Part shown: positions 23,678 through 28,271 of the stretch, in pieces
Position numbering within the stretch: position 1 is the first letter of the stretch
Layout of the letters: each line of letters begins with the position of its first letter
Assembly: GCA_977020255.1 (NCBI GenBank)
Contig: CDROCS010001089.1
Coordinates: 496,001-560,000, forward strand
DNA: 64,000 nucleotides
Source of the DNA: Obrimoposthia wandeli
Taxonomy: Eukaryota
Direction of reading: 5' to 3'
Program-made: the position numbers and the translations under genes
The notes under the pieces: model-generated
What the model saw: the letters and a program-made list of their open reading frames with translations, nothing else
Databases searched by the model: none
What the model was told of the DNA's origin: nothing

Positions 23678-24931
23678 ATGGAAAGTTTTGAGTACCGCAA
23701 CAATAGTTTGCACTGCGAAAACGTATTACTCAGCAAAGTGGCAGAGGAGTATGCTACGCCAACTTATGTCTATTCTAGAGATGCCATTGAGCTTGGCTAT
23801 CTTGCATATGCCAATGCACTAGAAGGCAGAAACGACATGGTTTGCTACGCGATGAAAGCAAACAGTAATATCGCAGTATTAAACGTATTAGCGCGTTTAG
23901 GTGCCGGTTTTGATGTGGTTTCTCAAGGCGAGTTAGAGCGCGTATTGACAGCGGGGGGGCAAGCTAGTCGTATTGTGTTTTCAGGTGTATCAAAACAATC
24001 TAGTGAAATTCGCCGCGCTTTAGAAGTGGGCATCCACTGTTTTAATATTGAATCAGAATCGGAGTTGATTCGTATCAATGCGGTTGCTGAGCAAATGGCA
24101 ATGCAGGCACCTATCTCTTTTCGTATAAATCCCAATGTTGACGCGGGCACTCATCCATATATATCTACGGGTCTTAAAGAAAATAAATTTGGTATCGACA
24201 TTGAAGAAGCGTTGCGCATTTATCAACACGGCGCAAGTTTGAGCAACGTTAATATCATTGGCATGGATTGTCATATTGGTAGTCAGCTAACTCAAATAGC
24301 CCCTTTTATGGATGCTATGGATAAATTGCTAGCACTGATCGATACCTTAGCAGAACATGGTATTACACTTAAGCATTTAGATCTTGGTGGCGGGTTAGGT
24401 GTTTGTTACACCGATGAGCAACCACCCAGTGCTGCTGAGTATATCGGAGCTGTTTTAGAAAAAATTGGCGAGAGAAAGCTGTCTCTAATTTTTGAACCGG
24501 GGCGATCTATTGTGGCAAATGCAGGGGTATTATTGACTGAAGTTGAATACCTAAAACATAACGAAAGCAAAAATTTCGCCATTGTAGATGCTGCGATGAA
24601 TGACTTGCTACGCCCTGCTTTGTATAGCGCCTATCAAGAAATTATTCCGTTACAGATTAATGAAGATATAGCAAAGCATAACTATGATGTGGTCGGCCCT
24701 GTTTGTGAAACGAGTGATTTTTTGGGAAAAGATCGTCAGCTAGCCATTGCCCCAGGAGATTTACTGGCGGTATGTTCTGCGGGCGCTTATGGTTTTACAA
24801 TGAGTTCAAACTACAACACTCGAACACGCGCCGCTGAAATAATGATTGATGATAATGAAATTTATGAAATCCGCAAACGAGAAACTTTTGCAGATTTAGT
24901 GAAAGGTGAAAAATTACTACCTGAAGACTAA
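23678..24931 (+). CDS. lysA: Diaminopimelate decarboxylase
   Basis: YAMKANSN (PLP Lys), GFDVVSQGE, HPYISTGLKENKFG, HIGSQL, EPGRS, GPVCETSD, GAYG...SNYN. Confidence 0.97.
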   Translation: MESFEYRNNSLHCENVLLSKVAEEYATPTYVYSRDAIELGYLAYANALEGRNDMVCYAMKANSNIAVLNVLARLGAGFDVVSQGELERVLTAGGQASRIVFSGVSKQSSEIRRALEVGIHCFNIESESELIRINAVAEQMAMQAPISFRINPNVDAGTHPYISTGLKENKFGIDIEEALRIYQHGASLSNVNIIGMDCHIGSQLTQIAPFMDAMDKLLALIDTLAEHGITLKHLDLGGGLGVCYTDEQPPSAAEYIGAVLEKIGERKLSLIFEPGRSIVANAGVLLTEVEYLKHNESKNFAIVDAAMNDLLRPALYSAYQEIIPLQINEDIAKHNYDVVGPVCETSDFLGKDRQLAIAPGDLLAVCSAGAYGFTMSSNYNTRTRAAEIMIDDNEIYEIRKRETFADLVKGEKLLPED

Positions 24932-24938
24932 TCCAAAC

Positions 24939-24968
24939 TGGCTATGATCATTATTGTGATCATAGCCA
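24939..24968. repeat. Intergenic stem-loop between lysA and dapF
   Basis: TGGCTATGATCA-TTATTG-TGATCATAGCCA, a perfect 12-bp stem with no U-tract, so a processing/stability hairpin or weak terminator. Confidence 0.5.
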
Positions 24969-25010
24969 TATCAATAAGTGTGATACTTAAAATAAAAACG
25001 GAAAAGAATA

Positions 25011-25844
25011 ATGCTACTACGTTTTACCAAAATGCATGGGTTAGGTAATGACTTTATGGTTGTTGATTTAGTCACTCAGCGCTTCAAATTTAATTCGCAA
25101 ATGGTAAAACGTCTTGGGGATCGAAAATTAGGCATTGGCTTTGACCAGCTACTTATTATTGAAATTCCTACCGATCCAGATATGGACTTTCGCTACCGTA
25201 TTTTCAATGCCGATGGCAGCGAAGTTGAACATTGTGGCAATGGCGCGCGATGCTTCGCACTTTTTGTGAAAGACAAGAGACTCACTGTTAAAAAGCAGGT
25301 TAAGGTTGAAACCGCTAAAGGTAATATGCTGCTGACTATTCGCGATGATCGCCAAGTGGAAGTCGATATGGGTGCACCGATACTCTCTCCGGCTGAAATA
25401 CCTTTTATAGCGGCCGAGCAGCAAAAAACCTACCCTTTACAAGTCGCAGGGCAGCAGTGGCAAATCTCAGCTATATCGATGGGAAACCCCCATGCAGTAA
25501 TAGTCGTTGATGATGTGCAAACAACAGCGGTGGAATCTTTAGGGCCTGCTATTCAAGCGATGAACTGTTTTCCAAATGGCGCCAATATTGGCTTCATGCA
25601 AATAGTCAGTGACAGTGAAATTAACTTACGTGTTTACGAGCGCTCTGTAGGTGAAACGCTTGCCTGCGGCACTGGGGCATGTGCAGCGGTAGTTGCTGGT
25701 AGGCAGCGCGGTTTGCTTAGTGAGCGAGTTAAAGTAAACGTTACAGGTGGTTGTCTAGAAATTTTTTGGCAAGGCCAAGACAGTGATCCAGTAATAATGA
25801 CAGGGCCTGCAACAAGTGTTTTTGAAGGGAAAATTTTTATATGA
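25011..25844 (+). CDS. dapF: Diaminopimelate epimerase
   Basis: FTKMHGLGNDF, EVEHCGNGARCF, SMGNPHAV, YERSVGETLACGTGACA. Confidence 0.97.
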   Translation: MLLRFTKMHGLGNDFMVVDLVTQRFKFNSQMVKRLGDRKLGIGFDQLLIIEIPTDPDMDFRYRIFNADGSEVEHCGNGARCFALFVKDKRLTVKKQVKVETAKGNMLLTIRDDRQVEVDMGAPILSPAEIPFIAAEQQKTYPLQVAGQQWQISAISMGNPHAVIVVDDVQTTAVESLGPAIQAMNCFPNGANIGFMQIVSDSEINLRVYERSVGETLACGTGACAAVVAGRQRGLLSERVKVNVTGGCLEIFWQGQDSDPVIMTGPATSVFEGKIFI

Positions 25845-26545
25845 GTAACACCGAAGATAAACAAATTAATACACCGAGTATAACTCGCGAACAAGTTGCC
25901 GCCTTCTTGCAAAAAGATGCAGATTTTTTTATTGAGTATGAGTATCTATTAGAAGTACTATCGGTACCGCATGAATCGGGAGCAGCGGTTTCTTTTGTTG
26001 AGAGGCAGTCTTCTATGCTGCGCGAAAAGAACAAAAAACTCACTGTTCATTTATCTGATTTTTGCGACGCAGCGCGGCACAATGATGTGCAGTTTGAAAA
26101 GACTAAACGCATGGTGCTATCGCTATTAGATGCACAAACACTAGATGATTTAGGTGATGCGTTAGAAGAGAGCTTATGCCGAGATTTTTACGGAGATGCT
26201 ACATCGCTTATTTTGTTTGACGATAAGCAACTAACCGTTAATAACCGACGCATGATGCCACGTGAAATGGCAGGCATTGTAGAGCCGCTGATGATTTCTA
26301 ATCAACCTAGTTGTGGCAACTTATCAGCCGCTGAGAATCACTTTTTATTCGAAAATCGCTCTGCTATGATTCAATCCGCCGCGGTTATTCCCTTAGTACA
26401 AGGGGAGACAATGGGTTTGTTAGGCATTGGTAGTTTTGATGAAGATTATTTTCAAAGTAGCCAAGGAACAATGTTTTTAACTTATGTTGGTGAGGTTTTA
26501 AGCCGTGTGGCAAGTCGCATTTTGCAAAGCAAAGTTGAGCCTTAA
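25841..26545 (+). CDS. DUF484 (YigA-family) protein
   Basis: VAAFLQKDADFF, LSVPHESGAAVSFVERQ, QGTMFL; canonical position between dapF and xerC. Confidence 0.9.
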   Translation: MSNTEDKQINTPSITREQVAAFLQKDADFFIEYEYLLEVLSVPHESGAAVSFVERQSSMLREKNKKLTVHLSDFCDAARHNDVQFEKTKRMVLSLLDAQTLDDLGDALEESLCRDFYGDATSLILFDDKQLTVNNRRMMPREMAGIVEPLMISNQPSCGNLSAAENHFLFENRSAMIQSAAVIPLVQGETMGLLGIGSFDEDYFQSSQGTMFLTYVGEVLSRVASRILQSKVEP

Positions 26546-26620
26546 ATAGTACAATTCAAAGCGTGTTGTATGTTATAAAAGTAGTTATTTGCAGAAACTT
26601 TTGTTATCAATAAGAGACGA

Positions 26621-26664
26621 CTGTCCAGTTAAAAAGATTATAAAAATGAATACGGACAGCCATG
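26621..26664. repeat. Possible internally deleted remnant of MITE family A
   Basis: CTGTCCAGTTAAAAAG matches the element end at 15/16, and CGGACAGCCATG (11/12) follows about 20 bp later in inverted orientation. Confidence 0.4.
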
Positions 26665-26671
26665 TCAACAA

Positions 26672-27559
26672 GTGATGAATATGAGCTCTTTTAAAGCAAT
26701 ATCAAACCTGAGTTTGCCGCTTGAACAATATATCGCTTACTTACAGCGTCAATCGTTAGCTAACAACAGTTTAGTCAACTATCGTAGTGATTTGTCTCGC
26801 TTTCTGGATTTTATCGCTGACTATCGATTAAAAAAGTGGCAAAGTATAAGTGAAAAACAAGCTCAAGCTTTTTTTTGGGACGCTCATAACAGCGGAAAAT
26901 CAAGAGCAAGTATTAATCGTCAGCTCAGTACTGTACGAGGATTTTTTAACTATTTAAGACGTACTTTACAACTTGATTTTGACCCATTGCTTGGTCTGAA
27001 TTTACCAAAAGAATTAGCGGTTGTAGCGGCGACCGTAACCCCTATTAATTTACCATTATTGCTAAAATTTACAGTAATAGATTTTATGACTGCGCGAGAC
27101 AAAGCGCTATTAACGCTGCTCATCGAATGTGGTATTACTATTACTGAACTGGCAGCATTAGAGCTGTTTAGCCTAAATATAGCGCAAAGCAGCGTGGTTT
27201 GTGTTGAGCAAAAAGGTAAGCAAAGAGAAATTAAACTCAGCCAAATCTGTTTAGAAGCTTTAGAGTGTTGGATGCAATATCGTGTATCAATATCTTCGCT
27301 AGAGCCTGCACTGTTTATTTCTAAACAGGGACGGCGCCTCAGCGTTCGTGCGATTCAACTGCGCATTCAGCATAGAGGGCAACAAATTACTACTAGCAAC
27401 TTGAGTGTTAGAAAATTACAGCAAGCTAGAGATCAGCAACGATTGGCTGATGATAAAACCACTATAGATCAAACAGCTGAGCACGAAAACGCCCTAGCCC
27501 AGCAACAACTGATAACAGCATATTTACATGCGCACCCAAGAGCGAATAAAAATGATTAA
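26672..27559 (+). CDS. xerC: XerC-like tyrosine recombinase homolog with degenerate catalytic site
   Basis: Canonical dapF-DUF484-xerC-yigB position, core-binding domain (SINRQLSTVRGFFNYL), ARDKALL, LFISKQGRRLSVRAIQ and terminal AHPRA. Catalytic Arg, His-x-x-Arg and Tyr are missing. Confidence 0.85.
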   Translation: MMNMSSFKAISNLSLPLEQYIAYLQRQSLANNSLVNYRSDLSRFLDFIADYRLKKWQSISEKQAQAFFWDAHNSGKSRASINRQLSTVRGFFNYLRRTLQLDFDPLLGLNLPKELAVVAATVTPINLPLLLKFTVIDFMTARDKALLTLLIECGITITELAALELFSLNIAQSSVVCVEQKGKQREIKLSQICLEALECWMQYRVSISSLEPALFISKQGRRLSVRAIQLRIQHRGQQITTSNLSVRKLQQARDQQRLADDKTTIDQTAEHENALAQQQLITAYLHAHPRANKND

Positions 27560-28271
27560 ATGCCTAACTTTCGATTTAGATGATACTTTGTGGGATATTC
27601 GACCTGTCATTAAAAATGTAGATTTGCAACTTTATCTTTGGTTGCAGCAAAATGCGCCAGCTTACACCGCCAAGTATGCTTTAGAGAACTTTGAAGCACT
27701 GCGTAAACAAGTGGTGAATGCATACCCTGAAATAGCGCACAGTGTGACAGATATTCGCAAAAAAGGGTTACAGATAGGTTTAACCAAATCTGGCTATGAT
27801 CCCCAACAGGTTGTTAAGCTGGCAGAACAGGGGTTTGAGGTTGCACTTAAAGCGCGCCAAGAAGTAAATTATTTTCCCCATGTTTGGCCTGCGTTAGATG
27901 AGCTAAAAGCGCAGGGGTACGTTATGGGCGCAATCACCAACGGTAATGCTGATATCTACAAAGTGGGGTTGCAAGACCATTTTGATTTTCAGTTTAATGC
28001 GCATGACTGTGGAGTAGAAAAACCACACCCAAGTATCTTTGAACAAATGCTAACGCATGCTGGATTATCAAGCCGACAAGTTATTCATATTGGTGATAAC
28101 CCAATTGCTGATGTACAAGGTGCACAACAACTGGGAATGTCGACCATTTGGGTAAATGTTATCACACAGCAATGGTCCCATGATTTTAATGCAGATCAAC
28201 AGATTGATTGTATTAGCGAGCTTCCAGCAGCAGTGCAAAAGATAGTGAAAGCTAGAAAGCTAGAAAGCTAG
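27552..28271 (+). CDS. HAD-superfamily hydrolase (YigB-like)
   Basis: TFDLDDTLW motif I, ITNGNAD, KPHPSIF, HIGDNPIADVQGA. The ATG overlaps the xerC stop. Confidence 0.92.
   Translation: MIKCLTFDLDDTLWDIRPVIKNVDLQLYLWLQQNAPAYTAKYALENFEALRKQVVNAYPEIAHSVTDIRKKGLQIGLTKSGYDPQQVVKLAEQGFEVALKARQEVNYFPHVWPALDELKAQGYVMGAITNGNADIYKVGLQDHFDFQFNAHDCGVEKPHPSIFEQMLTHAGLSSRQVIHIGDNPIADVQGAQQLGMSTIWVNVITQQWSHDFNADQQIDCISELPAAVQKIVKARKLES

Follow-up and report, generated by a model that had tools for sequence, protein, structure and literature searches.

The tyrosine recombinases XerC and XerD are regarded as near-universal in bacteria with circular chromosomes, where they are needed for the resolution of chromosome dimers, and the C-terminal tail of XerC and of XerD touches the partner subunit. 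To our knowledge, lineages without XerC/XerD have so far been recognised by the absence or the replacement of the genes. A part played by Bacillus subtilis XerD in relation to SMC is reportedly independent of catalysis. Replacement of XerCD by single recombinases is documented for XerS and XerH (PMC5357621) and for XerL in the Legionellales (PMC9765430), and the XerS, XerH, XerL and XerA lineages all bypass the canonical XerC + XerD mechanism (PMC5357621, PMC9765430). In such single-recombinase lineages XerC/XerD are not the acting recombinases, and in Legionella any Xer homologue had previously escaped notice (PMC9765430). A survey of 2009 listed gammaproteobacteria with genomes of 2–5 Mb, including Colwellia psychrerythraea and Saccharophagus degradans, that are without detectable dif/Xer (PMC2731167). 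Functions of Xer proteins without strand exchange have also been described: the Y272F variant of Pseudomonas aeruginosa XerC, a protein involved in pyocin control, gives a phenotype less severe than that of the deletion (PMC8609362), and a passage of PMC12322038, citing Karaboja 2021, describes B. subtilis XerD as a sequence-specific SMC unloader. Inactive tyrosine-recombinase folds are already known from phages and transposons. The prophage master repressors MrpR/YopR (SPbeta) and SroF (phi3T) have the tyrosine-recombinase fold without its catalytic residues, have lost recombinase activity and act by binding DNA (PMC10516654), and in TnsF, a target selector from Tn6022-like Tn7 transposons, the recombinase domain is inactive (PMC10293859).

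The locus described here differs from each of these, the new element being that the housekeeping xerC gene itself has been converted, at its native position and across a diverse clade with ordinary-size genomes. Like the canonical XerCs of E. coli and Nitrincolaceae, the gene product is encoded in a dapF-yigA-xerC-yigB locus and is a basic two-domain protein with the N-domain motifs and a Y-x2-AHPRA tail; unlike them, it has all six catalytic positions lost or not conserved and approximately 10 residues deleted around the Tyr helix, and it evolves about three times faster relative to its neighbours. B. subtilis XerD and P. aeruginosa XerC are still active recombinases, whereas catalysis in the dead XerC is entirely gone, and in contrast to the single-recombinase lineages xerC has here been retained, intact and under selection. 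MrpR/YopR and SroF are regulators encoded by phages of Bacillota and are not orthologous to a housekeeping Xer protein, and no specific sequence relationship to them was found; TnsF belongs to a mobile element, carries zinc fingers in addition and is missing most of the catalytic domain. Common descent with proteins of the MrpR, SroF or TnsF type was not found, the tree placing the dead XerC within Nitrincolaceae XerC, so that the likeness is at the level of the fold only. In the full-text literature, coverage of which was incomplete and is no proof, we found neither a description of a catalytically dead XerC orthologue nor a link between XerC and Osedax symbionts or Nitrincolaceae.

The window, i.e. 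the whole stretch of 64,000 nt that was analysed, contains an uninterrupted xerC-derived ORF on the plus strand at 26672–27559, which encodes 295 aa if read from its GTG; the alignment with L002, the closest relative, indicates that the probable true start is the ATG at 26681, giving 292 aa. Residue numbers below are those of the 295-aa protein, and the features to which the text refers are the following.

23678–25844, plus strand: lysA and dapF, the upstream genes of the conserved block
25841–26545, plus strand: yigA (DUF484), the upstream operon partner, highly conserved
26546–26680, plus strand: yigA-xerC spacer, with an insertion of about 50 nt relative to L002 and an imperfect 13-nt inverted repeat
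26672–27559, plus strand: dead XerC ORF (295 aa from GTG 26672, 292 aa from ATG 26681)
26720–26962, plus strand: core-binding (N-terminal SAM-like) domain, residues 17–97, PF02899; the most constrained part
27050–27385, plus strand: first two thirds of the catalytic-domain fold, residues 127–238; partial PF00589 match, active-site residues gone
27125–27151, plus strand: box I remnant ECGITITEL, in which T156 (27137–27139) replaces catalytic Arg I
27392–27520, plus strand: degenerate, shortened and Tyr-free segment, residues 241–283, which replaces helices K–M, His III and the Tyr nucleophile
27410–27424, plus strand: box II remnant R247-K-L-Q-Q, in place of H-x-L-R-H
27521–27544, plus strand: C-terminal motif Y284-LHAHPRA, homologous to the XerC tail Y287-x2-AHPRA
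27552–28271, plus strand: yigB (HAD phosphatase), with an 8-nt overlap (ATGATTAA) between its probable start and the xerC stop, likewise in relatives

The gene order lysA-dapF-yigA-xerC-yigB is identical in the window, in E. coli K-12 and in every relative examined, which confirms the description in the initial annotation of an intact 295-aa ORF at the canonical xerC locus, coupled to yigB. GC content and GC3 of the dead xerC are only slightly lower than those of the neighbouring genes. A scan of the operon for promoters and terminators gave nothing above chance, and none of the RNA runs searched for the locus contained it. The spacer between yigA and xerC is variable: in canonical relatives it is short or missing, the two genes overlapping in E. 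coli and in L007 and being 15–19 bp apart in Neptuniibacter (L029, L030), and across the dead clade they are separated by 14 to ~130 bp. In the window, positions 26596–26671 hold approximately 50 nt that are extra with respect to L002, and the arms of the imperfect inverted repeat lie at 26614–26626 and 26654–26666.

Alignment with E. coli XerC and XerD and with relatives bore out both of the altered arginine boxes that had been reported for this protein. Residues 152–160 read ECGITITEL, with T156 aligned to R148 of E. coli XerC (Arg I), and residues 247–251 read RKLQQ at the positions of XerC H240, R243 and H244, the His and Arg of box II being replaced by R247 and Q250. Overall, the catalytic residues R148, K172, H240, R243, H266 and Y275 of XerC correspond to T, Q (or K if a one-residue shift is allowed), R and Q, with the last two absent. 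A ‘KG’ motif that had been considered to be retained is not conserved among relatives and is therefore no evidence for a retained Lys. The only tyrosines of the window protein are residues 20, 23, 37, 51, 94, 203 and 284, with none between 204 and 283; because Tyr is absent from the poorly alignable segment 241–283, the nucleophile position is without Tyr under any alignment. The earlier claim that the Tyr-bearing segment had been deleted downstream of H271 thus stands as regards the missing nucleophile, but its account of the deletion has to be revised: the distance from the box II Arg position to Y284 is 34 residues compared with 44 in E. coli, a net loss of about 10, and the placement of the deletion is ambiguous, since H271 falls under H266 or under H277 depending on the alignment. 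Y284 itself is the homologue of a conserved non-catalytic residue, Y287 of E. coli XerC.

The same loss is seen in the relatives. The full R-K-H-R-H-Y set is present in 25/25 of the canonical sequences aligned, whereas not one of the dead-clade members aligned (13, together with 7 further loci and 7 further cluster representatives) has the Tyr, His II or His III. Subclades differ in the Arg that they retain, both arginines being present in L003, L012 and L014 and Arg II only in L004, L010 and P0003, as expected if the constraint on the pocket was lifted once and independent decay then followed. As the Tyr nucleophile and both histidines (II and III) are missing, and in most cases Arg I and Arg II as well, the protein cannot, as judged from its sequence, cleave or rejoin DNA or work as a tyrosine recombinase. 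Annotation pipelines name the dead XerCs ‘integrase/recombinase XerC’ or ‘site-specific integrase’, labels that conceal the catalytic loss.

With respect to family membership, both domains of the two-domain fold that defines the tyrosine recombinase superfamily were recognised above threshold: PF02899 scored 62.5 bits against a gathering threshold of 22.3, and PF00589 (Phage_integrase) scored 45.0 bits against a threshold of 27.1, over profile positions 8–120 of 172 only. The NCBIfam XerC equivalog TIGR02224 scored 122.7 bits, below its cutoff of 335.15 and over profile positions 1–231 of 295 only; by this model the score and the catalytic residues are not those of XerC, whereas the orthology of the locus and the placement in the XerC tree are. 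Canonical XerC positions are kept at 61% in the N-domain, 51% in the first half of the C-domain and 23% in the last part, mostly in the terminal tail, and two residues of the helix that follows the beta-sheet, R226 and Q229, are invariant in the clade members compared. The pI of dead-clade proteins, 9.4–10.6, is similar to or slightly above that of canonical XerC. Positions of the C-terminal motif are each kept in 62–85% of dead-clade members (85% for Y284), and the AHPRA motif has been lost in one subclade (P0007, P0009, P0010 and L013), so contact with XerD is not universally kept. The initial annotation, which had the core-binding domain and the HPRA helix both retained, was thus right that they are among the best-kept parts, but the HPRA tail is missing from that subclade.

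The AlphaFold2 model of the window protein had a mean pLDDT of 88, with high confidence for residues 11–250 and values above 90 in the core-binding domain, and residues 246–287 were modelled as one long helix of low confidence (pLDDT 59–76 in segment 241–283). The model of the Osedax-symbiont orthologue, which is without the deletion, has two further helices and, at the expected site of the Tyr helix, a disordered stretch with a pLDDT of 42. Best matches by Foldseek were XerD (1a0p) and XerA, with E values of approximately 1e-10 (best 1.5e-10). VIA gave Z scores of 17.0 to XerA and 16.4 to XerD, a Z score of 16.4 over 146 residues at 2.6 Å to 5dcf, the C-terminal (catalytic) domain of XerD, and Z scores of 12.8–13.7 for the core-binding domain against isolated integrase N-domains. 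A separate observation is that the nearest clusters to the protein in the ESM Atlas (window 26672–27556) are Bacillota families of 260–290 aa in which mostly the N-terminal SAM-like domain only is recognised, which suggests that there are other unrecognised recombinase-derived families with degenerate catalytic domains.

Approximately 25 syntenic orthologues were identified, all of them intact ORFs and all Tyr-less, forming 11 clusters at 50% identity and including those of the Osedax symbiont Rs2, of TARA plankton and of complete MAG chromosomes of 4.8–5.1 Mb; marine bacteria of free-living and of symbiotic habit are both represented. A word-based protein search found relatives of 80–85% identity in Oceanospirillaceae MAGs and a series at 35–45% that includes ‘Osedax’ symbiont Rs2. 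A scan of species-representative genomes gave seven loci (two, L008 and L009, are on contigs already represented by L002 and L004), among them loci on the complete MAG chromosomes CP093399.1 (4.79 Mb; 4,792,813 bp) and OZ251574.1 (5.06 Mb; 5,055,701 bp). Ten loci of the clade came from a scan of JGI metagenomes; among these, L016 is nearly identical to L004, and L021 and L006 are one and the same contig. Another relative, P0006, lies on a 4.90-Mb ENA contig (4,899,468 bp). The limits of the clade were sharp in a profile search of 1.84 billion representatives, in which eleven 50%-identity clusters scored 246–436 bits and were followed by a gap to 174 bits or less, a zone in which the full-length matches that were aligned proved to be canonical XerCs. 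Every member examined, including one on a TARA Oceans scaffold, has the lysA-dapF-yigA-xerC-yigB block and a full-length open frame, and 43 residues are invariant across nine members that are 35–80% identical to the window protein.

Two candidates from the metagenome scan, L026 and L027, were rejected as clade members, being unrelated canonical recombinases. In a divergent member on a long-read contig of 3x coverage (L031:46–2778) lysA and yigA are in pieces and the dead xerC is intact; the split genes are most likely due to sequencing error in this low-coverage contig. A metagenome contig of 2.9 kb (L028:224–2903) holds three overlapping tandem tyrosine-recombinase ORFs (224–1144, 985–2058 and 1935–2903), an arrangement unrelated to the dead XerC.

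In a maximum-likelihood tree the 13 dead sequences form one clade (SH-aLRT 100), whose stem is 1.26 changes per site long and which is nested within canonical Nitrincolaceae XerC (Neptunomonas, Amphritea, Nitrincola and Marinobacterium) with the canonical sequence P0172 as its sister; when the closest canonical XerCs, P0011 and P0172, served as queries, the named matches were from cultured genera of this family, namely Neptunomonas, Neptuniibacter, Marinobacterium, Amphritea and Nitrincola. The dN/dS (NG86) of the dead xerC is 0.13–0.18 in four pairs drawn from three subclades, with bootstrap 95% intervals within 0.08–0.27 and upper bounds of 0.20–0.27, and that of the flanking genes is 0.02–0.13. 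Within the gene, values are 0.06–0.11 for the core-binding domain and 0.12–0.23 for the catalytic-domain remnant; in the tail they are 0.17–0.23 in two pairs and approximately 1.1, on few changes, in the pairs L003-L012 and L012-L014. The ratio of dN in xerC to dN in lysA is 5.6 in the dead clade compared with 2.3 in a canonical Neptuniibacter control pair, so that constraint has been relaxed about threefold, yet evolution is clearly not neutral. Low dN/dS, intact ORFs in approximately 25 orthologues and their grouping in a single clade together mark this as a selected pseudo-enzyme and not a decaying gene. The initial annotation had proposed as much, and had named neutral decay with frameshifted relatives as the sign of an ordinary pseudogene; there were no frameshifted copies among the orthologues. 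Established by these results are the loss of the active site, the orthology to xerC, the single origin and the selection.

We consider it rather probable that the gene is a xerC orthologue in which catalysis was lost a single time and which has been retained as a non-catalytic DNA-binding or partner protein. The loss would have taken place in the ancestor of a subclade of uncultured Nitrincolaceae (Oceanospirillales), after which the gene would have been kept, as a protein, by purifying selection. The product, predicted still to be basic, to have both Xer domains and in most lineages to retain the Y-x2-AHPRA tail, may act by sequence-specific DNA binding, most simply at a XerC-type half-site, by partnering XerD, or by both, and would be an architectural or regulatory subunit. 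It is from the kept core-binding domain, the core of the second domain with R226 and Q229, the basic pI and the tail present in most lineages that we infer such a role, and with it DNA binding, the partner and the target site. Evolution faster than that of canonical XerC, the tail dN/dS of about 1 in one subclade and the loss of AHPRA weigh against this explanation.

The consequences reach beyond the gene. Canonical dimer resolution proceeds in two steps, a first strand exchange made by XerD and a second made by XerC; with a XerC that is without catalysis, this route is closed to these bacteria. The gene is intact and selected, and its chemistry is gone, in at least 11 clusters at 50% identity with genomes of free-living size, which raises the questions of how these bacteria resolve dimers and which non-catalytic Xer function is selected; P. 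aeruginosa XerC Y272F and B. subtilis XerD have given earlier hints of such a function.

One alternative, which we hold only tentatively, is that XerC and XerD are both catalytically dead and are kept as a non-catalytic DNA-binding pair, dimers being resolved by a different recombinase. A dead pair may serve in terminus organisation, in the unloading of SMC-type complexes or in regulation. Several points agree with this: one subclade does without the AHPRA partner tail, cases are known in which one unrelated Xer has taken the place of XerCD (XerL, PMC9765430; XerS and XerH, PMC5357621), some gammaproteobacteria of 2–5 Mb are without detectable dif/Xer (PMC2731167), and B. subtilis XerD is an SMC unloader according to the passage of PMC12322038 mentioned above. 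In its full form, which is conceivable and in our view improbable, a clade of marine gammaproteobacteria with 5-Mb genomes would have retired the whole XerCD pair while keeping the DNA-binding complex, with dimers handled by an undescribed, unrelated system. If so, these bacteria would be a living example of a halfway stage in replacing the dif/XerCD machinery, which is nearly universal, and their XerC would be a separation-of-function mutant made by nature that lays bare what Xer proteins do apart from catalysis. As to other recombinases, a family HMM run over six-frame ORFs of the window and 14 loci found one tyrosine recombinase gene per locus and no second, and the window contains no dif-like site at up to 3 mismatches. 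Searches for a second canonical xerC with P0011 and P0172 as queries, a weak test, returned none from the complete chromosomes or named MAGs of the clade among the best 120 of 8000 matches per search.

Equally doubtful is a resolution by XerD alone, in which XerD would be intact and the dead XerC would sit on the XerC arm of dif and let FtsK-activated XerD form Holliday junctions that are finished by RuvABC or by replication. E. coli XerC Y275F reportedly fails to sustain dimer resolution, which speaks against this mechanism, as does the loss of the tail in one subclade. It would be in keeping with the conserved core-binding domain and with the C-terminal tail kept in most lineages, and a precedent exists in IMEX integration, a single-strand-exchange Xer reaction completed by replication (PMC3442271).

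It is unlikely, although the fold would allow it, that the protein has taken on the new role of a transcription factor unrelated to dif in the style of MrpR and SroF. Its structural matches do include SroF bound to DNA (9rd5, Z 13.7) and MrpR/YopR (8a0a and 8bpz, Z 10.9), its ESM Atlas neighbours are clusters with only the N-terminal domain recognised, and the new upstream spacer uncouples xerC from yigA; however, the Z scores to SroF and MrpR are no better than those to active recombinases, so these matches speak for the fold only.

Very improbable, and largely refuted, is an ordinary pseudogene whose ORF stays open for no other reason than to bring ribosomes to yigB, with which it overlaps: the overlap of the xerC stop with the yigB start in several lineages, the evolution faster than that of the neighbours and the tail dN/dS near 1 in one subclade would fit, but the dN/dS of the whole gene with its upper bounds, the still lower values of the N-domain, the full-length ORFs that stay intact across saturated synonymous divergence and the 43 invariant residues do not.

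Hardly credible is a recombinase that is still active through another nucleophile or a remodelled pocket (Y284 being present in 85% of the clade, and L003, L012 and L014 having both arginines), or else an artefact of assembly, since Y284 is homologous to the non-catalytic Y287, no other candidate residue is conserved clade-wide, conservation and model confidence are both lowest in segment 241–283, and an independent assembly is without indels. The last point comes from Logan contigs of a public run (X1), which cover the whole ORF with zero indels, so that assembly error is excluded as far as it can be checked. Run X1 also contains two coexisting strains over window positions 26503–27800, a major one at a depth of ~14–18 and a minor one at ~7–9, which differ by 5–9% of nucleotides in places across yigA-xerC-yigB, again with no indels. 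In the minor strain, 14 of the 22 ORF differences listed fall at third codon positions.
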